Below are positions 14,946 to 30,413 of a stretch of DNA of 64,000 nt, piece after piece. The notes beneath the pieces were generated by a model that saw only the letters and a list, made by a program, of their open reading frames with translations, did not search any database and was not told the origin of the DNA. The position numbers were made by a program, and so were the translations under genes. The DNA is taken from the IMG/VR virus record IMGVR_UViG_3300041402_000314, positions 1 through 64,000 of that record. One strand, 5' to 3'. Positions within the stretch are counted from its first letter, which is position 1; every line of letters begins with the position of its first letter.

Positions 14946-15281
14946 TTAAGATGTAATTAGTTCAACTATCTTCTTAAAATAATCTTTGGATATAGAATCA
15001 AATCCTATTTCATCCATCCTTTCCACCAAATCATATTTATTAGTTGTTACATACTGAGCTAAATTACAGTGGAAGTCATCACAACCTTCACCGAACAATA
15101 CAAATCCCATTTGCCCGAACTCACCATCATCTATTCGGCTCATTATCTCGTATTTTAAATCAAACTCTTCTGGAAAGTCGATATATCTCTTTGTCGCATA
15201 TTTTATCGACATATTTTTCAATACTTCGAATGTATATCTTTTAAAAACATAATTCCAAATTCTATCAAATCTAGCGATCAT
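14946..15281 (-). CDS. hypothetical protein
   Basis: 111 aa; GAGGA RBS. Confidence 0.6.
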   Translation of the reverse strand: MIARFDRIWNYVFKRYTFEVLKNMSIKYATKRYIDFPEEFDLKYEIMSRIDDGEFGQMGFVLFGEGCDDFHCNLAQYVTTNKYDLVERMDEIGFDSISKDYFKKIVELITS

Positions 15282-15302
15282 AAACTTTCCTCAATAATAT
15301 TT

Positions 15303-15377
15303 TGGCAGGTCGCCAAGGACTTGAACCCTGATTCTCGGCATTGGAAACCGATGCTCTACCAATTGAACTAACGACCC
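15303..15377 (-). tRNA. tRNA-Trp(CCA)
   Basis: TCGGT-TTCCAAT-GCCGA; G73; CCA. Confidence 0.9.
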
Positions 15378-15386
15378 ACATTTTAA

Positions 15387-15578
15387 TTACTCTTCTCTTA
15401 CTATCTTAAATCCTTTTACCTTTTGTATATCTGGAATGAGGCTTTTGGAATATATTAATCTCCATGTTCCATCACCAACCTTTTCTATATTGATCATCTC
15501 AATTTTAGTATCGATCTCTACTACCTTGGAAAGCTCCAATACTTTCCCTATTCCTTCTATCTCAATGCTTCGCTTCAT
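15387..15578 (-). CDS. hypothetical protein
   Basis: 63 aa ORF in operon. Confidence 0.55.
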   Translation of the reverse strand: MKRSIEIEGIGKVLELSKVVEIDTKIEMINIEKVGDGTWRLIYSKSLIPDIQKVKGFKIVREE

Positions 15579-15777
15579 ATTCTTTTATCTTCCTAGCTAC
15601 TAGACTTGGTTTAACTGGATATTCGCCTATCGTATCTCCATATTCGCCATCTGATAATTCAAACAATATTTTCTTATCTTTCCAGACTTTTAACGTATGC
15701 CCTTCCCAATAATCTTGAATACTCCAAGCATATTTAACACCGTCTACAACAATATCCCTAAACTTCTTTTTAGCCAT
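15562..15777 (-). CDS. hypothetical protein
   Basis: MAKKKFRDIVVDGVKYAW; overlapping start/stop. Confidence 0.6.
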   Translation of the reverse strand: MAKKKFRDIVVDGVKYAWSIQDYWEGHTLKVWKDKKILFELSDGEYGDTIGEYPVKPSLVARKIKEYEAKH

Positions 15778-15919
15778 TCGGTATCTCTCCTGTTAGTAAC
15801 CAAAAATCATATTCATCTCTTGTCCAGCCTAACACATCCCAAAGAGTTCTATCATCTTCTTTATCTTCGTGCCATTTATCTATAGCTCCATCTATCTCTT
15901 TTTCGTCCGTAATTTTCAT
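15770..15919 (-). CDS. small hypothetical protein (possibly leaderless mRNA)
   Basis: ATG at 15919 lies 7 nt below the -10 box; WHE...LWDVLGWTRDEY. Confidence 0.55.
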   Translation of the reverse strand: MKITDEKEIDGAIDKWHEDKEDDRTLWDVLGWTRDEYDFWLLTGEIPNG

Positions 15920-15926
15920 AACACCT

Positions 15927-16002
15927 ATTATACCAAAATCAATCTCGTTTGTCAAGCATAAAAAAAGCCTCTTAAACATTTTATTTGTCTAAGAGGCTTT
16001 TT
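15927..16002 (-). terminator. intrinsic terminator fused to a sigma70 promoter
   Basis: AAAAAGCCTCTTA/TAAGAGGCTTTTTTT, then ATGC, then TTGACA-17-TATAAT. Confidence 0.85.
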
Positions 16003-16021
16003 AGAGTTATGTATATTATTA

Positions 16022-16168
16022 CTACTCTATATAGAACTCCCCCTTAGACGATACAAACCAATCCGCATTCAGCGCATTGAGATTTAGATGTAGGTCTGCA
16101 TTACATTGAATTACTGGCAATGTCGGTAAATTATTAAATTGTCTATTATCGTTTCTTCGAATGTTCAT
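16022..16168 (-). CDS. putative attenuator leader peptide 1 (48 aa, Asn-rich)
   Basis: Own promoter at 16195-16224, GAAGGGA RBS; MNIRRNDNRQFNNLPTLPVIQCNADLHLNLNALNADWFVSSKGEFYIE-TAG; its 3' end is complementary to the terminator 5' arm. Confidence 0.5.
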   Translation of the reverse strand: MNIRRNDNRQFNNLPTLPVIQCNADLHLNLNALNADWFVSSKGEFYIE

Positions 16169-16248
16169 TTTCCCTTCTCTAATTTTATATACACATTATA
16201 CCATAAAGGATATGTGTTTGTCAAGTCTTTGTTTTAAGTATTTATATA

Positions 16249-16440
16249 TCAAGAATTTTTCTTGTCCAGAACACCCCATGATGAACCACATGGTTTAGTC
16301 GGAAAACCACACTGCTTTAATTGACTAGCTACCCATTCAGCTATTTCTTCCCTAGTTTTATCTTTGAATCCACTAGGATACATATTCATAGTAATAGCTA
16401 TATCAAAACAAATATCCACAAGCTCTTGTTTTTCACTCAT
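16249..16440 (-). CDS. hypothetical protein
   Basis: 63 aa; GGAG RBS. Confidence 0.55.
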   Translation of the reverse strand: MSEKQELVDICFDIAITMNMYPSGFKDKTREEIAEWVASQLKQCGFPTKPCGSSWGVLDKKNS

Positions 16441-16815
16441 TTACAAACTCCTCCATCAATCTTCTAGCTTCTCTATGATCACAATTTAATGCTCTCTCGA
16501 TATCATAACGAAGTAATGCTTCTGGTTGACCAATAAATTCAAGAGCTAATTTACCTATGATCTCTCTAACAGTAAGATCGTATTTCTCTATTCTATCACT
16601 CAGTTCCATTATATACTCCTCCTATCCAATCAGGAGGTGCTAGAAATACACCCTTCCCATCATGATTCTTACATCCCTTATTAGAGCAGTAATACCACCA
16701 ATCCCATTCATTAGCATCTTTGAAATTAGTAAACTCATTATTACAACAAGCCATTACTACAGGCCATCCACAGTCTTTGCAGTAATTATGTTCATATATT
16801 CTAGCAGAAGAACTA

Positions 16816-17109
16816 CTATTCTTCGCTTTCACCGAACATCTCCTTGAATCTTTCGCCAGCTTCTCTTCCCGATCTACCTGCTTCAAGAAAGTCTTCGACT
16901 TGTTCCATAGTTTCCAATGTTACCACAGGATGTTCGCCCGACTCATTATCTATCAGGTTATTTAATCGTACTTCCATAGCCCCAGATTCCATTAGGATAT
17001 GGTATATGTCGCCTTTCGACTTCTCAAGCTCTTCCAAGAACTGTTCTCTAGGCATTGCCCTTAGTTCCTCAAAGACCACATCCATCGCTTTTCTCATTTT
17101 ATCATTCAT
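16816..17109 (-). CDS. hypothetical protein
   Basis: 97 aa acidic ORF. Confidence 0.55.
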   Translation of the reverse strand: MNDKMRKAMDVVFEELRAMPREQFLEELEKSKGDIYHILMESGAMEVRLNNLIDNESGEHPVVTLETMEQVEDFLEAGRSGREAGERFKEMFGESEE

Positions 17110-17112
17110 TAT

Positions 17113-17304
17113 CTAACCTGCTGTTGGGTCTTCGATATAACCATTTCTCGATGCAGTAATGAGTTGGCAAAAGAATCGTAGAGTCTCTTCATCCGCTATT
17201 TTTCGATAAAGACCAATAGCAACGAAATCATCTTCTGACCCTTCAATTTTATTGTATATTGATGTTAATTCATGAACATTTGTCATTTCAAACTCCTTAT
17301 TCAA
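17113..17304 (-). CDS. hypothetical protein
   Basis: AAGGAG RBS. Confidence 0.5.
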   Translation of the reverse strand: MNKEFEMTNVHELTSIYNKIEGSEDDFVAIGLYRKIADEETLRFFCQLITASRNGYIEDPTAG

Positions 17305-17492
17305 TATTTCTTTCCTTTAAGTATTTCATCAAACATGCTCATGAAATTAGTATCTTGAAGGTCGGGTGTTTTATGATGCTTCCTCATATTTGTACATGAA
17401 CTACATATATGAGAGATATTCTTCTTTAATTTAGCATCTCTAATTTCGCCTAAATATGTTCCACAATCAACACAATGGATATCTCTAGCCAC
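17301..17492 (-). CDS. small zinc-finger protein
   Basis: HCVDCG...ICSSC; GTG start after AGGAG. Confidence 0.55.
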   Translation of the reverse strand: MARDIHCVDCGTYLGEIRDAKLKKNISHICSSCTNMRKHHKTPDLQDTNFMSMFDEILKGKKY

Positions 17493-17515
17493 ATTAAACT
17501 CCTATTCAAATATTT

Positions 17516-17592
17516 TGGTGGGTCTGACTGGAATTGAACCAGCGTTTTTCTCCGTAAGAGGGAGCTACAAAGCCAACTTTTGTTACAAACCC
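17516..17592 (-). tRNA. tRNA-Lys(CTT)
   Basis: CTCC-CTCTTAC-GGAG; GGGTTTG/CAGACCC-A-CCA. Confidence 0.85.
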
Positions 17593-17605
17593 ATTTAATT
17601 TATTT

Positions 17606-17680
17606 TGGTGAGGCCACTCGGAACTGCCCCGAGATTGACTGGTTAAAAGCCAGATATTCTTCTAGTTGAATTATAGCCCC
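17606..17680 (-). tRNA. tRNA-Lys(TTT)
   Basis: Loop CTTTTAA; non-canonical T-loop GGCAGTT; CCA. Confidence 0.88.
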
Positions 17681-17692
17681 ATTAATTTATAT

Positions 17693-17779
17693 TGGTGGGA
17701 TTGGAAGGATTTGAACCTTCGATGCATCTCTGCGTTCGGTTATGAGCCGAGTGCCTTAACCAGACTAGGCAACAATCCC
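17693..17779 (-). tRNA. tRNA(CAT) Met/Ile2 with long variable arm
   Basis: Loop CTCATAA; extra GCA-GAGA-TGC arm; GGGATTG/CAATCCC-A-CCA. Confidence 0.87.
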
Positions 17780-17785
17780 AATATT

Positions 17786-18061
17786 TTATTTCCGATTTTC
17801 CTTTAATGCTTTTTCGAGAGCTTCTAAATATTTTTCAAAATTTCCAGTTAGCCCAATGCCTTCTCTTTGTCTAAGTCCAGTGATATGAGCTATGAAATCT
17901 TTTTCATCAACCTTTTCTGGAAGTTCTTCAAACGGAATTCCGTTTCTTTTATAATAAATGAAGCCTGATATCATCCACCAAGCATCACAGTCATCTTCGA
18001 AACAGGCATCATATTCGAAGAGCAATGCTTTATGTTTTTTATTAAATATTTCAGAATCCAT
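17786..18061 (-). CDS. hypothetical protein
   Basis: 91 aa, TAATG coupling to the upstream ORF. Confidence 0.55.
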   Translation of the reverse strand: MDSEIFNKKHKALLFEYDACFEDDCDAWWMISGFIYYKRNGIPFEELPEKVDEKDFIAHITGLRQREGIGLTGNFEKYLEALEKALKENRK

Positions 18062-18246
18062 TAATCTTCCTCAAATATCGCTTCACATTTCTTTACATCT
18101 TTTTGTTTCAAGAGACCAACCATGAACTTCTGTATATGATATAAAACTTCTATATCATCACGATCTTGAGTTGGTTGATTAGGAGTTATTTCAGGACTCC
18201 TTAATTTTGTACCATCTTCAAGATGGATTTCTAAGTAATATGGCAT
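18061..18246 (-). CDS. hypothetical protein
   Basis: GAGG RBS. Confidence 0.5.
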   Translation of the reverse strand: MPYYLEIHLEDGTKLRSPEITPNQPTQDRDDIEVLYHIQKFMVGLLKQKDVKKCEAIFEED

Positions 18247-18258
18247 AGCCTCTTATTT

Positions 18259-18334
18259 TGGTGTTCCCACCGAGGCTTAAACTCGGTTCTCCATATTGAG
18301 AGTATGGTATCCTAATCAGGTAGACGATAGGAAC
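18259..18334 (-). tRNA. tRNA-Glu(CTC)
   Basis: CCATA-CTCTCAA-TATGG; CCA. Confidence 0.88.
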
Positions 18335-18349
18335 AATATTTAATTTTAA

Positions 18350-18427
18350 TGGTACACCTACGGGGTACTGACCCCCCCCGATCTCCAACGTGAAAGGCTG
18401 GCGAATTGTCCACTATTCGATAGGTGT
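18350..18427 (-). tRNA. tRNA-Glu(TTC) with disrupted T-loop
   Basis: CCAGC-CTTTCAC-GTTGG; T-arm reads CGGGG-GGGGTCAGTA-CCCCG (G8 run); 5' end overlapped by the endonuclease CDS. Confidence 0.7.
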
Positions 18428-19312
18428 ATAATCTTTTCTCTGATAATATTCTACTTCTGGATGGTATTTTTTAATCCATCTCTTAGTTTGTGTATGGCTT
18501 AATTCCCATATATCAGCTACTTGCTGTAACCATCCGAATTTATTTTTATCGACAGATTCTAAAGTTTTTCCTCTTTTACCTATAATTTTTTGGGTCGCTT
18601 TCTGTCTCTTTTCCTTTTCTCTTTTAACCTCTAGTACCTTCTTCTCTTTTCCTGTTAGAAGTTCACAAGTTTTACTAACCTCATTGATATCACCAATAAA
18701 CTGTTCTAAATCTATTATGATAGAGTTAACATCACTCAATACCTGTTTTGCCTTAACTCTATAGACTCTCCAACCTTGAGTTATTAGAAGAGTATCTTTT
18801 TTATCGTCACTAGCTTTTCTCTCAGGTTGTTCATGTTGCCCACCATCTATTTCAACTGCTACTTTAACATTCTCGAAAGCAAAATCTACAAAATATGGAT
18901 AGAAGCTTTTCTCTCTAGTTATTTCAAACTTATCATACCATCCATGTCTTTTCACCGCATTAATAAATACCTTTTCAGGCCAACTCATTTCATTACCAGT
19001 TCGCCAAGCTGTACAACTAGGATTCGCTTTCATATATGCGAGTCGCTTTTTTCTTATTTTCTCTCTAGTCTCTTCCGAAACAGATTTCCGATCTAATAAC
19101 GTTTCGATACACTTCTTATCACCACAACTCTTCTGGAAGGATATGGATTTTCTTAATTTAGCGTCTTTCCCACATACTTCACATTTCGGGATTAAAAATT
19201 TTTTATGAACAATAACATATTCTAATAGAGAAATATCATGTTGATTTTTTAAATGAATACTTAATCCTAAGTTTGATTTAGTCTTTTTATTACATATTTT
19301 ACATTCTTCCAT
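18413..19312 (-). CDS. DUF559/Vsr-like (PD-D/ExK) endonuclease with N-terminal zinc fingers
   Basis: CKIC..HLKNQH, CEVC, YFVDFAFENVKVAVEIDGGQH, DKKDTLLITQGWRVYR. Confidence 0.85.
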   Translation of the reverse strand: MEECKICNKKTKSNLGLSIHLKNQHDISLLEYVIVHKKFLIPKCEVCGKDAKLRKSISFQKSCGDKKCIETLLDRKSVSEETREKIRKKRLAYMKANPSCTAWRTGNEMSWPEKVFINAVKRHGWYDKFEITREKSFYPYFVDFAFENVKVAVEIDGGQHEQPERKASDDKKDTLLITQGWRVYRVKAKQVLSDVNSIIIDLEQFIGDINEVSKTCELLTGKEKKVLEVKREKEKRQKATQKIIGKRGKTLESVDKNKFGWLQQVADIWELSHTQTKRWIKKYHPEVEYYQRKDYTPIE

Positions 19313-19399
19313 TCGAAAATTCTCCGTTTTTAAGTATTTATACTTTCGGAAAAGTTTCGAACCTGTTTTAAAAGAGCAAGTTAAAAATCCTATTAATTT

Positions 19400-19476
19400 T
19401 GGTAGAGCTAGGGGGAATCGAACCCATCCGTTTTATGGTTGAAAACCATATGTCCTAACCGTTAGACGATAGCTCC
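19400..19476 (-). tRNA. tRNA-Glu(TTC)
   Basis: TATGG-TTTTCAA-CCATA; CCA; weak T-stem. Confidence 0.88.
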
Positions 19477-19486
19477 AAAATTATTT

Positions 19487-19699
19487 TTAATTTCTTTCCA
19501 TTTGTACCGTTCCACATTCAGGACAGCCGTATAAATTTACCTGGCGATCGGGTGACCAACTTTCACCAGTTTCTATAACAAAGTATCCCTTTATCTTTCT
19601 AAATTTATCACCATCAGGATTCACTTCAATATATTCATCCGCATCAATTCCATTATCAACCCAACCCATACCCTGTTCATATCCACAAACACATTTCAT
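19487..19699 (-). CDS. small zinc-ribbon protein
   Basis: MKCVCGY...LYGCPECG; GGAGA RBS. Confidence 0.6.
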   Translation of the reverse strand: MKCVCGYEQGMGWVDNGIDADEYIEVNPDGDKFRKIKGYFVIETGESWSPDRQVNLYGCPECGTVQMERN

Positions 19700-19701
19700 G
19701 A

Positions 19702-19926
19702 TTATCTCCTATGTACACAAAAGCTAGACACAATACAATCCAGATTACATTCTATTTTTCTCTCACATGGAGGATAGGCTTTCTTGTTAAATACTGCATT
19801 AACAAATCCTACTCCCATATGCGCTCCCATGATATCAGTGAACTCTTTCTCGGTGAAAGCATCACTGTTTAGAAGCATTAAATCCATTACTGTAACGAAG
19901 GTTACGTTTTCCTGAAAGTCATTCAT
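19702..19926 (-). CDS. hypothetical protein (possibly leaderless mRNA)
   Basis: ATG at 19926 is 7 nt below the TATAAT at 19934-19939; the ORF-track TTG start is the -35 box. Confidence 0.5.
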   Translation of the reverse strand: MNDFQENVTFVTVMDLMLLNSDAFTEKEFTDIMGAHMGVGFVNAVFNKKAYPPCERKIECNLDCIVSSFCVHRR

Positions 19927-19933
19927 AAGACAC

Positions 19934-20006
19934 ATTATAACAAATTGTTTTCCAGAAGTCAAGCATAAAAAAAAGCCTTTCAGAAATTAAATTCTTGAAA
20001 GGCTTT
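19934..20006 (-). terminator. intrinsic terminator fused to a sigma70 promoter
   Basis: AAAGCCTTTCA/TGAAAGGCTTT + T8, then ATGC, then TTGACT-17-TATAAT. Confidence 0.85.
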
Positions 20007-20033
20007 GGTGTTAATAATTGTATAGGAGTGGTA

Positions 20034-20150
20034 TTACTCGTCAGGCCACTCCATAGATACACGAAAGCCTTTATCTTTGAACTCTTTAGGTTCAAGTATA
20101 TTCTTTTTCTCTATTGCTATGTGTTTAGATAATTCTTTCGTTATTTGCAT
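20034..20150 (-). CDS. putative attenuator leader peptide 2 (38 aa, Lys/Glu-rich)
   Basis: AAGGA RBS; MQITKELSKHIAIEKKNILEPKEFKDKGFRVSMEWPDE-TAA; late promoter TATAAATA at 20178-20185. Confidence 0.5.
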   Translation of the reverse strand: MQITKELSKHIAIEKKNILEPKEFKDKGFRVSMEWPDE

Positions 20151-20402
20151 TTCGTGTCCTTTTATTAGTGTTTCAAGTATTTATATCTTTAGAAAATTTT
20201 CTAGGGTCTCCGAAATTTATAGAGCAACCCCTACACTCATAATAAATTGTTTTATTGTGAGTTGTCAGACCCAAACTAATGATATCCACTCTACTTATAC
20301 TTCTATATCTATTATGTCCGCATATCGGACAAATAAAATCTTCCAATTTTTATACCCCTATTATACCACAACTGGTATCAGTTTGTCAAGTCTTATTATT
20401 TT

Positions 20403-20476
20403 TGGTACTCCCTGATGGTACTGCCCCACCGCTTATTGGATGTAAACCAATCGCACTACTATTATACTAAGGGAGC
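20403..20476 (-). tRNA. tRNA-Val(TAC)
   Basis: ATTGG-TTTACAT-CCAAT; T-loop GGCAGTA; CCA. Confidence 0.87.
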
Positions 20477-20482
20477 AAATAT

Positions 20483-21394
20483 TTAATCTGTCTTTAATCT
20501 AAATCTACCCATTTCAGGACAACCTTCTCTCTTGAAATGAGTTCCTTCATACCTATTTATAACACCTTTTACTACCTTACCATCGACACAATCTGAATTC
20601 TTAAGAGCCTCATATATCTTAACGGCTTCTGGAGAATACATTATGTCATTTTTGGCAAGTCCTAATTCCATTCTCTCCATTACCATGATAGCATCAAAGG
20701 TCTTATAATCACAGCCTAGTTGTGCCTCATCGGTATTATCATCGGTCACACCAAGTCCATCACTAGGAGCCTGAGTTATGATATCTTCTCTAACACCCAA
20801 TAACCTAGCTATCGTAGGTAGTTCAAATCCCTTGAATATATATTGTATCGGTGCGAGGTCTCCAACGTCTCCGTGTAGTGTCCAGAAACCAGCGAGATAT
20901 TCACTGTAATTATCTGTACTCAGAACCAGACCATCATTCAGTCTAGCCATATCATAGAGCGTCATCATTCTCAACCGAGCTTTTATATTTCCCTGTCTGA
21001 TAGCACCATGATTAATTTTACCTGCTATGATGTCGTTATGTCTTAACACATTAGGTATAAATGTTTCCATAGTTTCATCTAACCAATGGACGCTATCATA
21101 GACAGTACAATGATTTGCACCAACCCATCCAGCCTGTTCACTATGCTTATCCGTTGTCGAAAGAGGTATATGGAGTCCGATCAAAGGAACGCCTATATAT
21201 TTCTCCTGACAAAGTGCAGCTATAACCGCACTATCGAGGCCACCAGAAACACCAACAACCAAAGATTTGAGCTTATTCTTATATACATAATCAGATACAA
21301 ATCTTCGCATTCTTCCTATGATGTCTTCAGCTTGCTCATCACTTAAGGTATATTTTGGTTCAACTGCTTCGACTAATCTCTTCAACTCAGACAT
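20483..21394 (-). CDS. nadE: NH3-dependent NAD+ synthetase
   Basis: VGVSGGLDSA PP-loop, GNIKARLRMMTLY, STDNYSE, FWTLHGD, APSDGL, TDEAQLG. Confidence 0.92.
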   Translation of the reverse strand: MSELKRLVEAVEPKYTLSDEQAEDIIGRMRRFVSDYVYKNKLKSLVVGVSGGLDSAVIAALCQEKYIGVPLIGLHIPLSTTDKHSEQAGWVGANHCTVYDSVHWLDETMETFIPNVLRHNDIIAGKINHGAIRQGNIKARLRMMTLYDMARLNDGLVLSTDNYSEYLAGFWTLHGDVGDLAPIQYIFKGFELPTIARLLGVREDIITQAPSDGLGVTDDNTDEAQLGCDYKTFDAIMVMERMELGLAKNDIMYSPEAVKIYEALKNSDCVDGKVVKGVINRYEGTHFKREGCPEMGRFRLKTD

Positions 21395-21426
21395 CCCAAA
21401 CCTCCATTATCAATTAAATGTATTTT

Positions 21427-21819
21427 TCAATAATCTTTATTCTTCAAAATTTCTTCCGCACCCTCATATAGTTCTTTAGCACCTTCGATATCTCCCTCAA
21501 CCCATCTTTCGAAAGAACTATTATTAGATTGGCAAGGAACTATTATAAGTCGTCCGTCTGAATAACCTGCTCCATGAGGCCATAGTTTATATAAAGGACA
21601 ATAATCTTCACAATCCATATCACCAAACGCATGAGGTTTTCTATCAGCATATTCACAACAAAAACATTCATTTTTCACATAACCATATTTATCCCATTCA
21701 GGCCATGCCCTTTTATCATGTGATTTATTTTCATAAACCCACTTCCAAAGCTCAATAGTCAATTCTATAACTTTTTTCTTAGTCAATCTAAAAGGTTTCT
21801 GGTGATCTAAATCAAACAT
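21427..21819 (-). CDS. Cys-rich hypothetical protein
   Basis: CFCCEY...CEDYCPL; GGAG RBS. Confidence 0.6.
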   Translation of the reverse strand: MFDLDHQKPFRLTKKKVIELTIELWKWVYENKSHDKRAWPEWDKYGYVKNECFCCEYADRKPHAFGDMDCEDYCPLYKLWPHGAGYSDGRLIIVPCQSNNSSFERWVEGDIEGAKELYEGAEEILKNKDY

Positions 21820-21845
21820 ATTTCATATCTCCTAATCAATATTGT

Positions 21846-22061
21846 TTAAAACCAATTTCCTTGCGAATCTTGCATAACTTCTTTTCCACATTTCGAACAT
21901 GTAGCAAGGGCAGAGCATCCATCAAAACTATTATTACCACCACTTCCATTATGCCATCCGAATGTCGAGCAGCTATAATGAGTACCTTTAAATCTGTCTA
22001 TCAGACAAAGAATGAATGGTAATAAAAATACCATAATCAAAATAATTAAAATAATTTTCAT
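21846..22061 (-). CDS. small membrane-anchored zinc-finger protein
   Basis: N-terminal hydrophobic helix; CSTFGWH...CSKCG. Confidence 0.6.
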   Translation of the reverse strand: MKIILIILIMVFLLPFILCLIDRFKGTHYSCSTFGWHNGSGGNNSFDGCSALATCSKCGKEVMQDSQGNWF

Positions 22062-22347
22062 GGGTTCTCCTCAAAAAATAGTGTATTGACCGTTCTCTTC
22101 TTCAACTTTCCTAATATATTCTTTGAGCTTTTTTACAGTTTTTTCCCGAAGAATTAACTTACCTTTATGGTAAAGATCATATCCCTCTTCTTTCATATGA
22201 TAACAATTATATTTATCAGTCACCGCCTTTATATTCCAAAGATAACCCATAACATTATCTGGTTTTTCTCTAGGAAAGTAATGATTACCATCATCTACAT
22301 AATGTGATCGTTGGTTTCTACTATATTCCCATTCAAGTTCTATCATT

Positions 22348-22539
22348 TTATTTCTCTTTTGGGTGTATGAACACCGTTGTTTTTTCTGGTGGTTTTGGTT
22401 CACATCTACTACAATGTCTTACTATTTCAAAATGTTCTGGACTATGACATTCACATTTAATATCATAGTAATAATATTTTCTACTTAGTTCAGAACTCTG
22501 TCCGCAAATATCACATACCCCGACTTCTATCTCACCCAT
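22348..22539 (-). CDS. small Cys-rich protein
   Basis: CDIC...CECH...HCSRC. Confidence 0.55.
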   Translation of the reverse strand: MGEIEVGVCDICGQSSELSRKYYYYDIKCECHSPEHFEIVRHCSRCEPKPPEKTTVFIHPKEK

Positions 22540-23011
22540 TTGACGTTCCCCAGATATTATACGGATTCTTTATCAAATTCGAATTAAGATATCTCGCATC
22601 ATCCGTAACTTCTTCTGTAACCCATTTAGGTTTCGCAAAGGTCTGATCTTCAGATTCTAATTCTATCTCTGCTACTATTAGTCCTTCGTTATCACCCCTA
22701 AATACATCGATTTCCCATGTCATACCAAAAACGACATATTCTAACCTAGTCTTCTCTAAAACACATTCACATTGTCCTAAAAGTCTCTCGGCATCGGCTA
22801 TCGGAATAGATAGTTCATATTCTACTCGCGTAATAGATTTATCACTCGATTTATAGGTCAAGAAGGCATCGTTACCGCTAGTTCTAACTCTTAATACTTT
22901 AAGACCAGACTCCATGAGATATCCTTGCCTGATTTTATGTATTTTATTACATGTATCACAAGACGGTAAATTAACATGGTCTACCAAAAACTTTCTTTCA
23001 ATTTCTACCAT
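22532..23011 (-). CDS. CYTH domain protein (adenylate cyclase/triphosphatase-like)
   Basis: EIERKFLV, IRQGYL, RVR, LTYK, EKTR, WEIDVF, AEIEL, YLNSNL. Confidence 0.9.
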   Translation of the reverse strand: MVEIERKFLVDHVNLPSCDTCNKIHKIRQGYLMESGLKVLRVRTSGNDAFLTYKSSDKSITRVEYELSIPIADAERLLGQCECVLEKTRLEYVVFGMTWEIDVFRGDNEGLIVAEIELESEDQTFAKPKWVTEEVTDDARYLNSNLIKNPYNIWGTSNG

Positions 23012-23032
23012 CTCAATCCTCTTTCAATTTTT

Positions 23033-23120
23033 TGGCGGTGAGGGTGGGAGTCGAACCCACGCACCTGTTACAGCCTAACGGTTTAGCAAACCGTCCTCTT
23101 AACCACTTGAGTACCCCACC
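23033..23120 (-). tRNA. tRNA-Ser(GCT)
   Basis: ACGGT-TTGCTAA-ACCGT, long variable arm, G73, CCA. Confidence 0.93.
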
Positions 23121-23280
23121 TAAATTATAATCTATATCCACACACTCTACAAACCATTTTAATCTCGAATTCAGTTTTACCTATCTGAACTTTGACTAAT
23201 CCAATTTCTTCAGCTTTACAGTGAGGACATTTCTTACCAGCTATTATTATATTAATATTTCTCTCACTCATTTAAAAAGT

Positions 23281-23309
23281 ATTATACTACATCCTTATCT
23301 GTTTGTCAA
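23281..23309 (-). promoter_or_regulatory. sigma70-type promoter
   Basis: TTGACA-17-TATAAT. Confidence 0.8.
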
Positions 23310-24181
23310 GTCCTATATAGACAGTTTTTAATAATATATCCCAACACATCATTATCCACCAACCGTTTAGCCATCGGAATATTCTGTGTATCTATAGCAC
23401 TTCTAACCACTGTAGACGAACAATCTATTGGAGCATCGGCATCTACCAGCATATGAGGTTCTTTCAGGAACCACGAGCTACTTGTTATATTCAAATCTTC
23501 TTCAGCTCTCGGAACAACTACAAAGGGTATTCTTCTTTCCAGTTCATCCCAACCAACCCATTTATTGGTGGTCATAGCATTATCAGCTCCCATTATGAAA
23601 GAGAACTGGTAATTATCATACTCAGGGTCATCGAGGATGCGATTCACGCAGTTTAAAGTCTCTCCCTTGAGCATGTGCCTTATTTCATAATCAAAAGCCT
23701 TTATACGTCCATCTACGGCTACAGCCATCTCTACCATTTTCAATCTTTGTTCTGGAGAAGTCATTTCCTTTCCGAACAGATGTTGGTAGCAAGGCATCAA
23801 CCAGACTTCATCAAATTTACCTGTAGCATCCAGAACCAATTGAGCTGTTTCTATATGACCTTTAGTAACAGGGTCAAAAGCTCCACCCAATATGGCTACC
23901 TTAGTCTTACGGCCTAATGATTTATATTGCTGTTCTCTTCTCTTTATCTTCTCATGAGCCATAGCTATGACATTAGATGCGTCCTCGCCCATTTCAGAGA
24001 TACCAGCTAGAACAGAACAAAGCAGATCGCCATATTCTTCTTTGAGATGATTTATATCAAGAAATCTACCGACCTCTTCTGCTTCTCTCTGGATATCCTT
24101 AACTCTTTCCGTTAATGGAGTCCTACCGAACATCTTTTGGAAGAGTTCATAATTCCTGTCTTGAAGGTCTTTTATACTCAT
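23306..24181 (-). CDS. nadD: MazG-like domain fused to NadD/NMNAT nucleotidyltransferase
   Basis: N-terminal REAEEV...EEYGDLL (MazG-like); C-terminal AILGGAFDPVTKGH (HxGH), FIMGAD, CSSTVVR. Probable ATG at 24181; the ORF track extends to 24283. Confidence 0.85.
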   Translation of the reverse strand: MSIKDLQDRNYELFQKMFGRTPLTERVKDIQREAEEVGRFLDINHLKEEYGDLLCSVLAGISEMGEDASNVIAMAHEKIKRREQQYKSLGRKTKVAILGGAFDPVTKGHIETAQLVLDATGKFDEVWLMPCYQHLFGKEMTSPEQRLKMVEMAVAVDGRIKAFDYEIRHMLKGETLNCVNRILDDPEYDNYQFSFIMGADNAMTTNKWVGWDELERRIPFVVVPRAEEDLNITSSSWFLKEPHMLVDADAPIDCSSTVVRSAIDTQNIPMAKRLVDNDVLGYIIKNCLYRT

Positions 24182-24355
24182 AGTTAATCCACAAATATCT
24201 CTAAAGGTTTTATCAGATAAATCCCTAATCATAGGCATTAATATTTTAGGAATTTCTTCATCCACAGTTAATCCCACTACCAACTATCATCATTATTAAT
24301 CCAGCGATAATGATGATAGTACCAAATATCAATTCAAACAGTCTCCATTTGTCCA

Positions 24356-24580
24356 TTATTTTATCACCCAAGCGTCAACAACACCCTTTATACGACCTGT
24401 TTGAAGTGCTTCAGAATACCCCCTTAACATACCTTCTTCGATGGTTCTCACTAATCTATCACCACATTTATCGAAGACGGTTTGGGCGAATGTTTCCTTA
24501 TCCTCTTCGGATGCCCAATCAGGACAAATATTATCCAAAAATTCTAAGATCGTTTTCTTATATTTGATATCAGTTTCCAT
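24356..24580 (-). CDS. hypothetical protein
   Basis: GAGGAG RBS. Confidence 0.55.
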   Translation of the reverse strand: METDIKYKKTILEFLDNICPDWASEEDKETFAQTVFDKCGDRLVRTIEEGMLRGYSEALQTGRIKGVVDAWVIK

Positions 24581-24645
24581 AAACGTTTCTCCTCAATTTT
24601 CAAACCATTATATTGTATATCAAATCAAAAGTCAAGTATTAATTT

Positions 24646-24720
24646 TGGAGCGGATATCGGAATTCGAATCCGACCTTTAAACTTGGCAAGCTTACGTGCT
24701 ACCACTAACACTATATCCGC
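24646..24720 (-). tRNA. tRNA-Gly(GCC)
   Basis: TAAGC-TTGCCAA-GTTTA; U73; CCA. Confidence 0.9.
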
Positions 24721-24726
24721 AAATTT

Positions 24727-24805
24727 TGGAGCGGATGGGGCGAGTCGAACGCCTTATTTACAGTTTGGAAAACTGCTTACCAATACCCTTGGCTTAACCA
24801 CCCGC
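24727..24805 (-). tRNA. tRNA-Gly(TCC) with enlarged D region
   Basis: GCAGT-TTTCCAA-ACTGT; GCGGGTG/CATCCGC-T-CCA; D region refolded as GCCAA-GGGTA-TTGGT. Confidence 0.8.
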
Positions 24806-24997
24806 ATTATCTAAACATTCTTTACATTTAAAAATTTCTGTACCATCATACATTTCAGTTTTAGAGTCGATTTTCCATAACCCCATACCAAACAATATAC
24901 AACTACTATCTTGCAAAAACCTACATATAACATATGCTCCTTCGGCATTCAAACTTCTACAAAGCTTACCATCTGGAACTTGAACTTGAACTAACAT
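24794..24997 (-). CDS. small Cys-rich protein, paralog-like to 8579..8782
   Basis: VQVPDGKLC...CRFL..CILF...KCKECL; stop codon lies inside tRNA-Gly(TCC). Confidence 0.5.
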   Translation of the reverse strand: MLVQVQVPDGKLCRSLNAEGAYVICRFLQDSSCILFGMGLWKIDSKTEMYDGTEIFKCKECLDNAGG

Positions 24998-25018
24998 TTT
25001 ATTCGCCTTTTTATTTTT

Positions 25019-25114
25019 TGGAGGAGAGGAGGAGATTTGAACTCCCATCGGAACCCGAAGACCCCGAATACGCTTTTCAAGAGCGTTCGACTATTCCCCA
25101 CTGTCAACCTCTCC
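25019..25114 (-). tRNA. tRNA-Ser(TGA)
   Basis: ACGCT-CTTGAAA-AGCGT, long TTCG-capped variable arm, U73 discriminator (G is usual for Ser), CCA. Confidence 0.85.
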
Positions 25115-25121
25115 AAATATT

Positions 25122-25322
25122 TTATAATCTAATACGTGACCCATCATTCCAAACCCATTCAAATACGGTATCGGAATCCCTGAATTTAATGAGATAACCA
25201 CTTCTCCAGTCAAGGCCACCTGTTTCTATTTTATGTTTCACCCACTCATCAATTTGCTTTCTTGTGGACAAATCGGTTCCTGTTTCTTCTGTATTATTTT
25301 TAATCAGTTTATAACGTGCCAT
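25122..25322 (-). CDS. hypothetical protein
   Basis: GAGGAAGG RBS. Confidence 0.5.
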   Translation of the reverse strand: MARYKLIKNNTEETGTDLSTRKQIDEWVKHKIETGGLDWRSGYLIKFRDSDTVFEWVWNDGSRIRL

Positions 25323-25323
25323 T

Positions 25324-25554
25324 TCAAACCTTCCTCAATTTCCATGCTAACCAATGGATAAATCCTTTAGAATATTTATAGTCATAAAATACAATAGCAG
25401 GTCTCATATTTTCAACATGTTTAATAAAATCTTTAGACATGTAAGGTGCTTTCAAAATTACCTTCGGTGATGATATATAAGGTAATATTTCTTCTATCTC
25501 TAAAAAATCTATTTGATGGATTCTAGCTATATTTTCAATATCTTCTTTAGTCAT
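25324..25554 (-). CDS. hypothetical protein
   Basis: 76 aa in operon. Confidence 0.5.
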   Translation of the reverse strand: MTKEDIENIARIHQIDFLEIEEILPYISSPKVILKAPYMSKDFIKHVENMRPAIVFYDYKYSKGFIHWLAWKLRKV

Positions 25555-25786
25555 TATTACCTTTGTATGTAAAATGATACCAATACCTAATACTCAAAAC
25601 AACCCAAAGGACAATCCATATTACATTAATAACTGGCACTGCTAATATTCCGCTCATATACCATATTATAGGGTTTTTATAATTATAACCGAATTTATGA
25701 TCAGGACCGCGAAATATATCTTCGCCAATGCAATACAAATAAAAACAAATAGCCAATCCTAAACCAACATACAAATAATATAACAT
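25547..25786 (-). CDS. membrane protein
   Basis: Two hydrophobic helices; GAGGA RBS. Confidence 0.6.
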   Translation of the reverse strand: MLYYLYVGLGLAICFYLYCIGEDIFRGPDHKFGYNYKNPIIWYMSGILAVPVINVIWIVLWVVLSIRYWYHFTYKGNND

Positions 25787-25802
25787 ATTATCCTCAATTT
25801 TT

Positions 25803-25890
25803 TGGCGGAGCGTGAGGAATTCGAATCCTCGTAGCTGTTACGCTAACCATCGCTTTCCAAGCGAGTACCTTACCACTCAGTCAACACTCC
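25803..25890 (-). tRNA. tRNA-Ser(GGA)
   Basis: Loop TTGGAAA, long variable arm, G73, CCA. Confidence 0.92.
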
Positions 25891-26180
25891 TAGAATTTTT
25901 TCATAACTTCTTTTATATCTTTACCATAACATTCTCTATTCAACTGACAAGTTTTTATATTGGCGGTTATATCGAAATCTTTAACTTTATCTAATTTCAA
26001 ATTCATTAATGTATTAGTAATGAATGATTCTGTTCGGTCTTGTATTTCCAGATCATCCTCATCATATTTATAATCAATACCAGCTTCAGTCAATGCCTGT
26101 TCTATTATAAAAGCAACAGTTGATTTACCAGCACCAGCGGTTCCGCCTATTTTTATTATCACATCGCTATTCATAATCAA
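25890..26180 (-). CDS. short P-loop-containing hypothetical protein
   Basis: IKIGGTAGAGKST Walker A-like motif in a 96 aa ORF. Confidence 0.55.
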   Translation of the reverse strand: MIMNSDVIIKIGGTAGAGKSTVAFIIEQALTEAGIDYKYDEDDLEIQDRTESFITNTLMNLKLDKVKDFDITANIKTCQLNRECYGKDIKEVMKKF

Positions 26181-26199
26181 ACTCCTTATTCAATTTTAA

Positions 26200-26285
26200 T
26201 GGTGGGTATGGAATGATTCGAACATTCTCAGCCTAAGACAGTGGATTTACAGTCCACTTCAGCTCTCCAACTCTGACGCATACCC
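26200..26285 (-). tRNA. tRNA-Tyr(GTA)
   Basis: GTGGA-CTGTAAA-TCCAC, variable arm, A73, CCA. Confidence 0.92.
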
Positions 26286-26299
26286 ATTTATTTAATTTT

Positions 26300-26385
26300 T
26301 GGTGGTCGTAGTAAGAATCGAACTTACACAGTACAAAGACGAGAGGTTTACAATCTCCGAGGCTCACCACCTGCCCAATACGACC
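26300..26385 (-). tRNA. second tRNA-Tyr(GTA)
   Basis: Loop TTGTAAA, variable arm, GGTCGTA/TACGACC-A-CCA; mismatch at pair 31:39. Confidence 0.82.
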
Positions 26386-26511
26386 TTATTTTTAATGCTG
26401 GAGTTAAGTTGTATCCAGCTACCCACATAGCTAAATTATGAAGTGCTACATCAGGAACCGTTGCGCGTCCTTGTTAGGCAATCAAGCTTCCTTCATAATC
26501 GCGGTATTTTT

Positions 26512-26659
26512 AATATGTATTCATGGTGAGTGGCACTAAGCCCTTACAATCTAGTTCATTAATCGTCATTAATGCTATTATTTTATCGGTTTGGCTGTCT
26601 ACTTTAACCGCTAGATCAAGCATTTACAGCTACCTTATGCCTCCCCATCAATACATATT
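26512..26659 (-). ncRNA. candidate rod-shaped ncRNA
   Basis: Nested stems AATATGTATT/AATACATATT, ATGG/CCAT, GGCA/TGCC, TAAG/CTTA, ATCTAG/CTAGAT, CGGTT/AACCG, CATTAAT/ATTAATG. Confidence 0.5.
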
Positions 26660-26666
26660 TAATTTT

Positions 26667-26742
26667 TGGAGCCTCCAGAGACAATCGAAATCTCATCTAT
26701 GGGTTACAAATCCATTGTTCTTGCCACTTGAACTATAGAGGC
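26667..26742 (-). tRNA. tRNA-Thr(TGT)
   Basis: Loop TTTGTAA; GCCTCTA/TGGAGGC-T-CCA. Confidence 0.9.
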
Positions 26743-26751
26743 ATATTTTTC

Positions 26752-26941
26752 TTATTTTATCCTATCTCTCAATTCTAACAACTCAAAATGAGTCTTGCGA
26801 AGTGTTTCTCTAAACTTCTGATTATACTCTTCAGAACCCCCAACATTCTTCAACCACGATCTCTGATAAATTTTTAATCGCAGACTGAAGGTGTGCTTTA
26901 ACGTCATCCAATCTTTCATCCGCTGTTGTAGTAACACTCAT
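26752..26941 (-). pseudogene. frameshifted small protein gene
   Basis: GGGAG RBS + ATG at 26941: MSVTTTADERLDDVKAHLQSAIKNLSEIVVEECWG, then a stop; removing one G from the G5 run (26837-26841) continues as SEEYNQKFRETLRKTHFELLELRDRIK. Confidence 0.6.
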
Positions 26942-26959
26942 CTCAAACTCCCTTTAATT

Positions 26960-27400
26960 ATTGGTCATAGTGATACGGACTATGACCGATCTCTATTTTT
27001 CACTACCGCACTAGCTACACTACACTTAGTAGTAGTCACCCCTTATAGTCAGTGTTATCAGCTTCTATGGCTTATTGCGTCTCTATGAGAAGACCTACCT
27101 CCACTTTTACCCTTGTTAGGGTGATAACCTTTCTATATCGTACAGGGATTATTCCGTCACGTTAATTAGAGTACGCATCTAATATCGTCTATTCCTACCT
27201 ACTCTTTTTTCAATAGGAACGGAAAGATTAATGGTGTTCAGGTCGCTCTATTGTCTCCTAGTCAGGTATTAAAAAAGAACCACTTCCTTTCAGAGAATCG
27301 AACTCCAACATCGTTTTGCCTAGAATTTATTGATGTCTCCTACCCATTACAAGAAACCATTCTACTTAGATACGATAGCCCTCAATGCACCATTAAAATT
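26960..27400 (-). ncRNA. candidate large structured ncRNA (~440 nt)
   Basis: No credible ORF; consensus promoter at 27416-27444; several long-range stems and a TTCGATT T-loop hairpin. Confidence 0.55.
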
Positions 27401-27415
27401 ATTCATTATTAAACC

Positions 27416-27444
27416 ATTATAACAAATTCCTTTTCATTTGTCAA
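27416..27444 (-). promoter_or_regulatory. sigma70-type promoter upstream of the large ncRNA candidate
   Basis: TTGACA-17-TATAAT. Confidence 0.85.
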
Positions 27445-27452
27445 GAACTATT

Positions 27453-28511
27453 TTACATTTGTTCTTGTTGGAAGAAATAATCTCTTACTACCTTAGAGAC
27501 TTTGTTGTTTACTTCCTTGACATCCAGACCAGCATCGGTAATGATGTCGAGGTCTTCCTTTACGATATCACCAATAACCCATCTGATGAAATCTCCCATT
27601 CCTTTACGATCTATCTCTCCGCCATTCAGAGTATCGAATGTTTCCTGTATGCCTTGCTCCATACGGAAAGCAGGAGTAATCTTATTTACCACTTCATTAA
27701 CAAGATTCATTTTAGCTTCGTCTACTTTAGGCAGCTTCTTTACTTTACTGGTAGAATGCTTTTCTCCCTTGACCTTAAAGCGAAAGTCATTGCCGTTAAA
27801 AACGCCTTTCCAGACCACACCCTCACCAACACCTTCATTTCCTAATTGGAAGGCCACAGGGCATCTTTCCTCGACTTCCAAAGTGATTTCATTCAACTTA
27901 TTCTGAAAAGCCTCTGGTTTATTGAAATCTATTTTTATTTCGAAGGTAGGAAATTCATCTATAAAGTAAATGTTATGATCATTAATTTTACTACCTCTAT
28001 TATTCGGACATACTTTACTTAAGTCTAACCAGAATCCATCTTCTTCATCATCATGAGACGTTATCTTAACATCGAAGATAACGAACATCTTATCAAGCCC
28101 ATTGACCCCAACACCTTTCTGAATAGACCCACCGCTGACTTCCCCGAAAATAGAAATGATGTTATTAATAGTATCGATATTAAAATCCTTAATTATTTCA
28201 GCTACGATATTATTGAATGAAACTTTTCTCGCATGTACGAAACAAGAAAACCCACAATTATCTTTTTCTGGGGTGATGATATTTTTCCTAGATTGCGTCC
28301 AAATACCACTTTCAGCATTAAAGCATACTGCACCATTACTTCCATGAATTTTAGTGGTTCCTGTTAATTTCAGAACTGGTTTCGGTCTCATCCCATCATA
28401 TACGGGTTCACCATCTTCTCCTATTCCTACAAAACTAGCAGAATGGCTTATATGTTTAACAATATTTCTATACTGTTCTATACTTGGGTACTTAATAAAC
28501 TTCTTTTCCAT
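27453..28511 (-). CDS. ATP-dependent RNA ligase (Rnl2-like)
   Basis: KYPSI, TKIHGSN (motif I KxxG), IFGEV, VIFDV, GEGVVW, FKVKGEKH. Confidence 0.88.
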   Translation of the reverse strand: MEKKFIKYPSIEQYRNIVKHISHSASFVGIGEDGEPVYDGMRPKPVLKLTGTTKIHGSNGAVCFNAESGIWTQSRKNIITPEKDNCGFSCFVHARKVSFNNIVAEIIKDFNIDTINNIISIFGEVSGGSIQKGVGVNGLDKMFVIFDVKITSHDDEEDGFWLDLSKVCPNNRGSKINDHNIYFIDEFPTFEIKIDFNKPEAFQNKLNEITLEVEERCPVAFQLGNEGVGEGVVWKGVFNGNDFRFKVKGEKHSTSKVKKLPKVDEAKMNLVNEVVNKITPAFRMEQGIQETFDTLNGGEIDRKGMGDFIRWVIGDIVKEDLDIITDAGLDVKEVNNKVSKVVRDYFFQQEQM

Positions 28512-28579
28512 TTTTATTCAATCTCCTATTTTATTCTTTATATAAATAATTAAAACACTTAATATCTTAGGACTAATAT

Positions 28580-29365
28580 ATGTTTCATTATGTTTATAGA
28601 ATAACCAATATAACGCCTCGATTAGAAAAATATTATATTGGAGTTCGATCTTCTTTAGATGAACCAAATGATGATAATTATTGGTCTTCATCGAAATATT
28701 TAAAGGAAGATATTAGTACCTTTGGTTTATCAAATTTTAAAAAGAAAATCATCAAAATTTTCAACAACCGAAAAGAAGCCATTGATTTCGAAATCAAAAT
28801 TCAAACTAAATTACAAGTTCATCACCATCCCTTATTTTATAATAAATCTACACAACCTTCAAATAAATTCAACAATCAAGGAAATCCAGAAATTATTAAA
28901 AGAAAAGTTCAAACAATGCAAAATACTATCATTGATGGTAAAACACTTTATCAAATAGCCGTCGCTAAAGGTATTGAAACTAAAAAGACAAAAATTTTAC
29001 CAAATGGTTTAACTGTATCAGAAAATCAAGTAGCTAATTTTATCGCCAATTTAGATATTCCCGATTCTAAAACTGGATTGACTCTTAGACAAAAATTACG
29101 GAAACCAAAAAACAATACATCTAATTATACTGGCAATCCAAAAACAGTCATTTTATATGATAGTAAAGATAATATCAAACATACTATCAATGATGGATTC
29201 CAAAAATACTGTCTTTTGTATAATTTACCATATACTGCTTTCAGAAAATCATACGGCGAACAAATACCAGTATATGAAAATATAACAAATCCCCGTACTA
29301 TTACCCTATTAAAGAACAAAAAATATTGGCAATATAAAGGTTGGTATGCCATTTTAAAGGTTTAG
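28580..29365 (+). CDS. GIY-YIG (Seg-like) homing endonuclease
   Basis: HYVYRITN...YYIGVRS, YWSSS, AIDFEIK, FYNK; opposite strand to neighbours; TATAAATA late promoter upstream. Confidence 0.85.
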   Translation: MFHYVYRITNITPRLEKYYIGVRSSLDEPNDDNYWSSSKYLKEDISTFGLSNFKKKIIKIFNNRKEAIDFEIKIQTKLQVHHHPLFYNKSTQPSNKFNNQGNPEIIKRKVQTMQNTIIDGKTLYQIAVAKGIETKKTKILPNGLTVSENQVANFIANLDIPDSKTGLTLRQKLRKPKNNTSNYTGNPKTVILYDSKDNIKHTINDGFQKYCLLYNLPYTAFRKSYGEQIPVYENITNPRTITLLKNKKYWQYKGWYAILKV

Positions 29366-29383
29366 TTCTTAATTCTAGGTTTC

Positions 29384-29686
29384 TCAATCTCCCTTATAAT
29401 ATTCACTTCTTCGTTTGGTAAAATTTTCTTTGTACAGCTCTTCTAGTCTTTCCTCAGTATTCTTCTCTGGTAGAACTGCATCTACTCCACATACAGGACA
29501 CATAGCAGTTTGTCCATCATCGACATATTCTGTTATCCCAGAACCTTTATAATTAGTACAACAACAGTAACAGCTACAATCGGTATCATCATTTATCAGA
29601 TGAGCATTTTTAAAAGACATTTCAGTTGCATTCCTTGTTGTAGAAAACATAGTATCAGGGCAATTATCTTCAAAATGTTTAGTCAT
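29384..29686 (-). CDS. conserved Cys-rich zinc-binding protein
   Basis: CSCYCC...DDGQTAMCPVCGVDAVLP; GGAG RBS. Confidence 0.65.
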   Translation of the reverse strand: MTKHFEDNCPDTMFSTTRNATEMSFKNAHLINDDTDCSCYCCCTNYKGSGITEYVDDGQTAMCPVCGVDAVLPEKNTEERLEELYKENFTKRRSEYYKGD

Positions 29687-29715
29687 TTTTCAATCTCCTT
29701 AATTATTTAAAGACT

Positions 29716-29784
29716 ATTGTAACAAATTTGTTTTCAGATGTCAAGCACAAAAAAGCCTCTCATCCGATTATGGAGAAGAGGCTT
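29716..29784 (-). terminator. intrinsic terminator fused to a sigma70 promoter
   Basis: AAGCCTCT..TCC/GGA..AGAGGCTT + T run, then GTGC, then TTGACA-17-TACAAT. Confidence 0.85.
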
Positions 29785-29811
29785 ATTGATAACAAAATTT
29801 TCCGTTACGTC

Positions 29812-29922
29812 TTACAATAAACCCTCTCCATTAGATATAGCTGTGCCAGTATAGCTGGAACTCTCGGTTCCGACTACTGAATACGAATAGCTATATGTTG
29901 TGGTTGTGTTTATTGCGTTCAT
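29812..29922 (-). CDS. putative attenuator leader peptide 3 (36 aa, Thr/Ser/Tyr-rich)
   Basis: AAGGA RBS; MNAINTTTTYSYSYSVVGTESSSYTGTAISNGEGLL-TAA. Confidence 0.55.
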   Translation of the reverse strand: MNAINTTTTYSYSYSVVGTESSSYTGTAISNGEGLL

Positions 29923-29968
29923 TTTGTTTCCTTTATTTTTAATTAATTTTTCGAAATGTTCTATTACA

Positions 29969-30223
29969 TTATCCTTTTTTTCCAGTTACATAACTTGGTT
30001 TCGTAACCGTTACATTCTTATTTTTAATAGTAACGACATCATCTTTAAAGATAGTTACATCTTTACCATTGATTTTAACCGAAAATTTACCATTAGGCTC
30101 TACATTTGAATCGAAACCAGCTTTATTTAAAAGTTTGCGTATTTTCTCTTGATTCTTACTGCCCTCATACGTAACACTACCTTCATTCAGGGCTTCATCT
30201 ATCCTTTCTATAATATCGGTCAT
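29969..30223 (-). CDS. late hypothetical protein with MxDIIERIDxxLxE N-terminus
   Basis: TATAAATA at 30242-30249; AAGGA RBS. Confidence 0.65.
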   Translation of the reverse strand: MTDIIERIDEALNEGSVTYEGSKNQEKIRKLLNKAGFDSNVEPNGKFSVKINGKDVTIFKDDVVTIKNKNVTVTKPSYVTGKKG

Positions 30224-30241
30224 GACAATCCTTATTTTAAG

Positions 30242-30249
30242 TATTTATA
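30242..30249 (-). promoter_or_regulatory. T4-type late promoter
   Basis: TATAAATA just upstream of an RBS. Confidence 0.7.
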
Positions 30250-30413
30250 TCTTCTATTTTTCTTCTCTGAATGCGTGACTAACTAAGGCGGAATCTTCAC
30301 CGCAATCAGGACATCTTTCTGTATGAGGTGGAGTCAAAGCCTTCGCAACTGATTTCTCAAAATATTTATGACACTTCTTACAAAAGTATTTATATAATGC
30401 CATATTTATCTCC

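Follow-up and report, generated by a model that had tools for sequence, protein, structure and literature searches.

A putative codon-sensing attenuator in front of the Glu/Ile/Lys tRNA genes of an uncultured T4-like phage

In an uncultured T4-like phage, a short reading frame rich in Lys, Glu and ATA-Ile codons, competing RNA hairpins and an intrinsic terminator are located in front of the Glu/Ile/Lys tRNA genes, and two sister units in the same genome match their own tRNA blocks in the same way. On computational evidence only, which is comparative and statistical and does not show codon-dependent read-through, this unit is best explained as a ribosome-sensing transcription attenuator of the classical leader-peptide kind, by which the phage probably tunes tRNA transcription to how fast the matching codons are read. 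This explanation is more likely than not, but it is not secured. An earlier note, made from the sequence alone, had proposed a Lys/Glu-rich leader-peptide attenuator giving extra transcription of the matching tRNA genes; every element that it named is present and its interpretation is supported, except that the enriched codons are Lys, Glu and ATA-Ile, not only Lys and Glu. The window analyzed here is the first 64 kb of a 204-kb virus record (IMG/VR IMGVR_UViG_3300041402_000314). The record has T4-type replication genes (family B polymerase, UvsX-like recombinase, SbcCD-like nuclease and RNA ligase), but its DNA polymerase is only about 35% identical to those of T4-like cyanophages, and no near relative was found in the phage collection searched, by DNA or by protein. 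Near-identical DNA occurs in a marine sediment metagenome, and partial matches occur in cold-seep metagenomes.

Architecture of the leader region

All the elements are on the minus strand. A tRNA-Val gene (20476-20406) is followed by a sigma-70-type promoter, P1 (20389-20360; TTGACA, 18 nt, TG-extended TATAAT), which matches the consensus at 12 of 12 positions and is conserved in relatives, and then by a 57-codon zinc-ribbon-like ORF (20346-20173) that gives only a weak PHROG hit and is absent in four of the seven relatives. A T4-type late-promoter motif, TATAAATACTTGAAAC (20185-20170), lies about 35 nt before the ATG of the leader and is conserved in all seven versions of the unit described below. 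Its box, TATAAATA (20185-20178), fits an extended motif (TATAAATA, A/C, TTAAAA); TATAAATA occurs 85 times in the genome against about 50 in shuffles, and 37 copies carry the extension, many of them in front of a Shine-Dalgarno sequence plus ATG. The leader ORF itself (20150-20034) has 38 codons, including 7 Lys, 6 Glu, 4 Ile (all ATA) and 2 Met, and AAGGA lies 7 nt before its ATG. The ribosome-binding site and region 1, ACACGAAATG, are located at 20161-20148. Inside the ORF, a 6-bp hairpin (TTGAAC/GTTCAA, 20095-20077) that is invariant among the versions lies just before region 2, and it may act as a pause hairpin.

Region 2, AAAGGCTTTCGTGT (20072-20059, codons 27-31), is complementary to region 3, ACACCAAAGCCTTT (20011-19998), at 13 of 14 positions with one C.C mismatch, exactly as the earlier note had stated, and the duplex has a predicted energy of -14.7 kcal/mol. 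Between these two regions, GGAGTGG (20052-20046) pairs with CCACTCC (20031-20025) to form a hairpin that holds the TAA stop codon (20036-20034) in its loop. Region 3 overlaps the 5′ arm of a strong intrinsic terminator (20006-19967), which consists of a 14-pair stem-loop (20006-19972, -15.9 kcal/mol) followed by eight T; it can pair either with region 2 or with the terminator 3′ arm. In co-transcriptional folding snapshots, the minimum free energy structure holds the 2:3 helix with the stop-codon hairpin at its tip until the terminator 3′ arm appears, whereas the full transcript prefers the terminator, -39.3 against -35.5 kcal/mol. Region 1 can pair with the 3′ half of region 2 both in the RNAalifold consensus fold of the seven versions, where the pairs are kept or wobble-compatible in most versions although only one-sided changes are seen, and in the single-sequence minimum free energy structure; the consensus fold also confirms the internal hairpin and the terminator. 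Sister unit A has an analogous 1:2 pairing.

Directly after the T tract lies a second consensus sigma-70-type promoter, P2 (19962-19934; TTGACT, 17 nt, TG-extended TATAAT), which the earlier note did not mention. In this unit (19939-19924) and in sister unit C (15932-15917), the ATG of the next ORF lies 7 nt after the -10 box of P2, suggesting leaderless mRNAs, while relatives have a normal leader with a ribosome-binding site at the same place. Two small ORFs of 74 and 70 codons (19926-19487), also unmentioned in the note, separate P2 from tRNA block B (19476-17516). This block holds Glu(ttc) (19476-19400), an atypical Glu(ttc) (18427-18350), Glu(ctc) (18334-18259), a tRNA with anticodon CAU (17779-17693), Lys(ttt) (17680-17609) and Lys(ctt) (17592-17516), together with an endonuclease gene and small ORFs. 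The other Glu genes and the Lys genes are supported by ARAGORN and/or Rfam, but the atypical Glu(ttc) is found only with relaxed ARAGORN and has an odd T arm. At 19312-18350, a DUF559/HNH-type endonuclease gene sits between tRNA-Glu copies and overlaps this atypical gene with its 3′ end, and relatives have the same endonuclease at this place. The CAU tRNA is 87 nt long with a long extra arm, and three relatives have a 74-nt tRNA-Ile(UAU) at the same position, which suggests two ways of reading ATA. Default ARAGORN misses five tRNA genes of the genome, Cys (2989-2916), Lys-ttt (17680-17609), Glu-ctc (18334-18259), Val-tac (20476-20406) and Gly-tcc (24805-24727), all of which are found by Rfam or relaxed ARAGORN, and the six genes in and beside block B whose sequences were read encode their CCA end. 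All tRNA genes of the genome lie between 2.9 and 26.7 kb on the minus strand, interspersed with NAD-related genes, namely NAD synthase (21394-20483), a CYTH-domain protein (23011-22532) and a nucleotidyltransferase of the NMN adenylyltransferase type (24283-23306).

Association of three leaders with three tRNA blocks

To test whether the complementarity exceeds chance, terminators were predicted over the whole genome, 27 strong and compact ones were kept, and the 118 nt upstream of each were examined for a segment that pairs with the 5′ arm better than in shuffled versions. Only three terminators, at 29784, 20006 and 16000, have such a complement (0 of 300 shuffles each), and the rest follow the null. 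With 1000 shuffles the three give p of 0.001-0.004, and 5-10 of 3000 random genomic windows reach their values; for the present unit, the complement beats 999 of 1000 shuffles and 2990 of 3000 windows. All three are on the tRNA strand in front of tRNA blocks, each is preceded by a small ORF with a good ribosome-binding site, and each is followed by the same junction of a T tract, A or G, and then TGCTTGAC of a consensus promoter.

The three terminators cut the tRNA region into three blocks. Sister unit A (29922-29753) has a 36-codon leader with a run of four Thr codons followed by alternating Tyr and Ser, in which 24 of 35 residues are Thr, Ser, Tyr, Gly or Val; its last codons and stop codon form the anti-terminator strand, and its terminator is conserved with a compensatory change in one locus (L036). 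It precedes block A, which holds Thr, Tyr x2, Ser x3, Gly x2 and Val. Sister unit C (16168-15964, or 16250-15964 with its own late motif and P1 promoter) has a 48-codon Asn/Leu-rich leader in which 35 of the first 37 residues have a tRNA in the downstream block, including single Cys, Trp and His. Block C holds Trp, Asn, Pro, Leu x2, Gln x2, His, Ala, Asp, Arg x2, Phe, Met-type x3, Ile, Cys and a tRNA with anticodon CUA (6001-5928), an amber reader called Pyl by ARAGORN. Leader C ends in TAG followed in frame by TAA TAA (16030-16022), so that its stop codon is also cognate to a tRNA of its block.

Each leader matches its own downstream block at the codon level: 20 of 35 codons in A, 18 of 37 in B and 35 of 47 in C are read by the tRNAs of their own block, against only 4-12 for either of the two other blocks. 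Among proteome windows of the same length, these values are reached by 4 of 8575, 39 of 8488 and 0 of 8010, respectively, and among 554 small ORFs of the genome each leader is at or next to the top. Leader A has no Lys codon and leader C has one, although Lys is the commonest residue of the proteome. The present unit, B, is the weakest of the three by itself (p about 0.005, with a 23% background), and its Lys/Glu/Ile codons are scattered rather than in a run, but the joint pattern is far from chance. The order of residues in the leaders mirrors tRNA gene order only loosely, and in unit A only.

It could be argued that the unit is an ordinary boundary between transcription units, at which a small conserved phage protein gene is ended by an intrinsic terminator and the next early promoter follows. 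Indeed, P1, the ORF and the terminator form a complete small unit, P2 restarts transcription at once, the peptide is conserved with in-frame indels, and Lys, Glu and Ile are the commonest residues of this AT-rich proteome, at 8-9% each. However, only the three terminators in front of tRNA blocks carry the complement, all three leaders match their own block and avoid the codons of the others, and the ORF product has no protein family hit; this view is considered unlikely, as the conservation described below also speaks against it. It is equally doubtful that the unit is a translation-coupled switch reporting general translation status, such as ribosome availability, coupling or host shut-off. 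The competing pairings involve the ribosome-binding site and the ORF end, so any change in initiation or elongation would shift the balance, and the relevant codons of this unit are dispersed; but a general sensor would have no reason to divide the amino acids among three leaders in line with three tRNA blocks.

Conservation in relatives

An exhaustive protein search found two homologs of the 38-residue product, and the neighboring 70-codon gene led to more contigs, whereas IMG/VR scans with two conserved words and with the NAD synthase found no homolog. Together they give seven distinct versions of unit B in the same gene order, that is, tRNA-Val, P1, leader, terminator, P2, variable ORFs, the 70-codon gene, and then Glu, Ile-type and Lys tRNAs; units A and C of the relatives were seen only where the retrieved loci reached. 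The ORF is kept through four different in-frame indels, one of which, of 3 nt, falls in the loop of the internal hairpin. About 37 nt covering the internal hairpin and region 2 are invariant even at synonymous sites, while the 70-codon neighbor is only 54-70% identical in protein. The peptide tail after region 2 is variable, but in all seven versions this stretch forms a hairpin more stable than shuffles (p 0-0.036), with the stop codon at the 3′ edge of the loop and with different arms (GGAG/CTCC, GAAG/CTTC, GAGG/CCTC, and GTGTAT/ATACA against GTGCG/CGCAC). Region 3 carries indels in two versions, yet 12-14 pairs with region 2 remain; all seven versions keep at least 12 complementary positions, and six of the seven truncated transcripts fold the anti-terminator as their minimum free energy structure. 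The pairing on which the earlier note's reading depended is thus retained in homologs. In unit C, the window and its relatives differ by one G inside region 2, which shifts the frame and the stop codon while the RNA elements stay, showing that the nucleotides, not the peptide tail, are constrained.

Because region 2 never varies among the close homologs, there is no classical two-sided covariation for the 2:3 helix except in a distant relative, L043, with 40% identity in the 70-codon gene. L043 has a late promoter, small ORF, stop-codon hairpin, terminator and promoter in the same order, and regions 2, 3 and 4 are all changed in step: region 2 is AGGGGATTT, region 3 is AAATCCCTT and the terminator 3′ arm is AAGGGATTT, so that the same three-way complementarity is rebuilt with other letters. 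Its 64-codon leader uses all 20 amino acids, as do 5.8% of proteome windows, and precedes one array of 20 tRNA genes. Of 45 distant loci found through the 70-codon gene, only L043 has this architecture. The long irregular hairpin could alternatively be an RNA processing, stability or translational-repression element of the tRNA precursor transcripts, since the leader transcripts are more structured than shuffles (z -2.2 to -4.5), the 1:2 pairing sequesters the start codon, and tRNA precursors need processing. However, the 3′ strand of the hairpin is exactly the terminator 5′ arm in four independent sequence contexts, and this view does not explain the match between codon content and tRNA block; it appears the least likely of the explanations considered.

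Proposed mechanism and comparison with known systems

Transcripts can start at P1 or at the late promoter, and region 2 can pair with region 1, can pair with region 3 and thereby block the terminator, or can be kept from pairing by a ribosome. It is inferred that, when the Lys, Glu or Ile codons are read slowly because the matching tRNAs are scarce, damaged or uncharged, the ribosome lags behind, region 2 is free when region 3 emerges, the anti-terminator forms, and RNA polymerase runs on into the Glu/Ile/Lys tRNA block. When decoding is fast, the ribosome would cover region 2 or sit on the stop codon inside the structure, and the terminator would form. Some points count against this mechanism: four of the Lys/Glu/Ile codons (codons 22-27) lie so close to region 2 that a stall there should favor termination, the stop codon lies 22 nt after region 2, so a terminating ribosome does not cover region 2 itself, and a function of the conserved peptide is not excluded. 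In addition, P2 follows the terminator at once and late-promoter motifs lie inside the blocks (19342 in block B, and 9766 and 8278), so the tRNAs do not depend on read-through, which can only add to other transcription, as the earlier note had proposed. The result would be negative feedback on phage tRNA supply on top of unconditional transcription from P2. In a wider reading, which is about as likely as not, this phage lineage measures decoding capacity through three attenuators whose codon sets divide the amino acids as its three tRNA blocks do, and each block of roughly 6-19 tRNA genes receives extra transcription only when its own codons are read slowly; such an autoregulated viral tRNA supply could respond to host tRNA pools, host shut-off or anticodon-nuclease defenses.

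Why phages carry tRNA genes is a long-standing question, for which codon compensation, replacement of degraded host tRNAs and escape from anticodon nucleases have been put forward (PMC10264068), all of which treat phage tRNAs as simply expressed. No description of leader-peptide attenuation of phage tRNA genes was found in the literature searched. If confirmed, such a sensor would be the first regulatory logic described for viral tRNA genes and the first leader-peptide attenuator whose regulated product is the tRNA itself. The tRNA regions of T4-like and T5-like phages likewise have clusters of tRNA genes mixed with small ORFs, homing endonucleases and NAD-salvage genes, with early and late promoters, and a T5-like region also holds an NMN adenylyltransferase and a transporter, but this T5-like region, scanned in the same way, has no such unit. 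The T-box riboswitch also senses tRNA status and switches between an anti-terminator and a terminator in front of translation-related genes, but it binds uncharged tRNA directly, needs no ORF and has a conserved T-box sequence; no Rfam match to it or to a leader family was found here at E up to 1-5, with only tRNA hits at 15000-27000 and no credible hit at 27000-31000, and PHROGs gave nothing for the unit. The closest resemblance appears to be to the Escherichia coli pheST attenuator with its pheM leader peptide and to multivalent leaders. In pheST, a gene of the translation apparatus is likewise preceded by a leader-peptide attenuator in which slow reading of cognate codons probably gives read-through of an intrinsic terminator; however, it is cellular, controls a synthetase protein gene, senses one amino acid through a run of Phe codons and has no strong promoter directly after the terminator, and it shows no sequence or Rfam relation to the present unit. 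The multivalent biosynthetic attenuators (thr, ilvGMEDA and ilvBN leaders) and the trp/his type have a short ORF, competing 1:2, 2:3 and 3:4 pairings, a terminator, and leaders that combine codons of several amino acids (general theory in PMC1183508). They regulate amino-acid biosynthesis and therefore report charged tRNA as a proxy for the amino acid, whereas here the putatively regulated products are the tRNAs themselves, three units divide the code among them, and the stop codon sits in an apical hairpin between regions 2 and 3.
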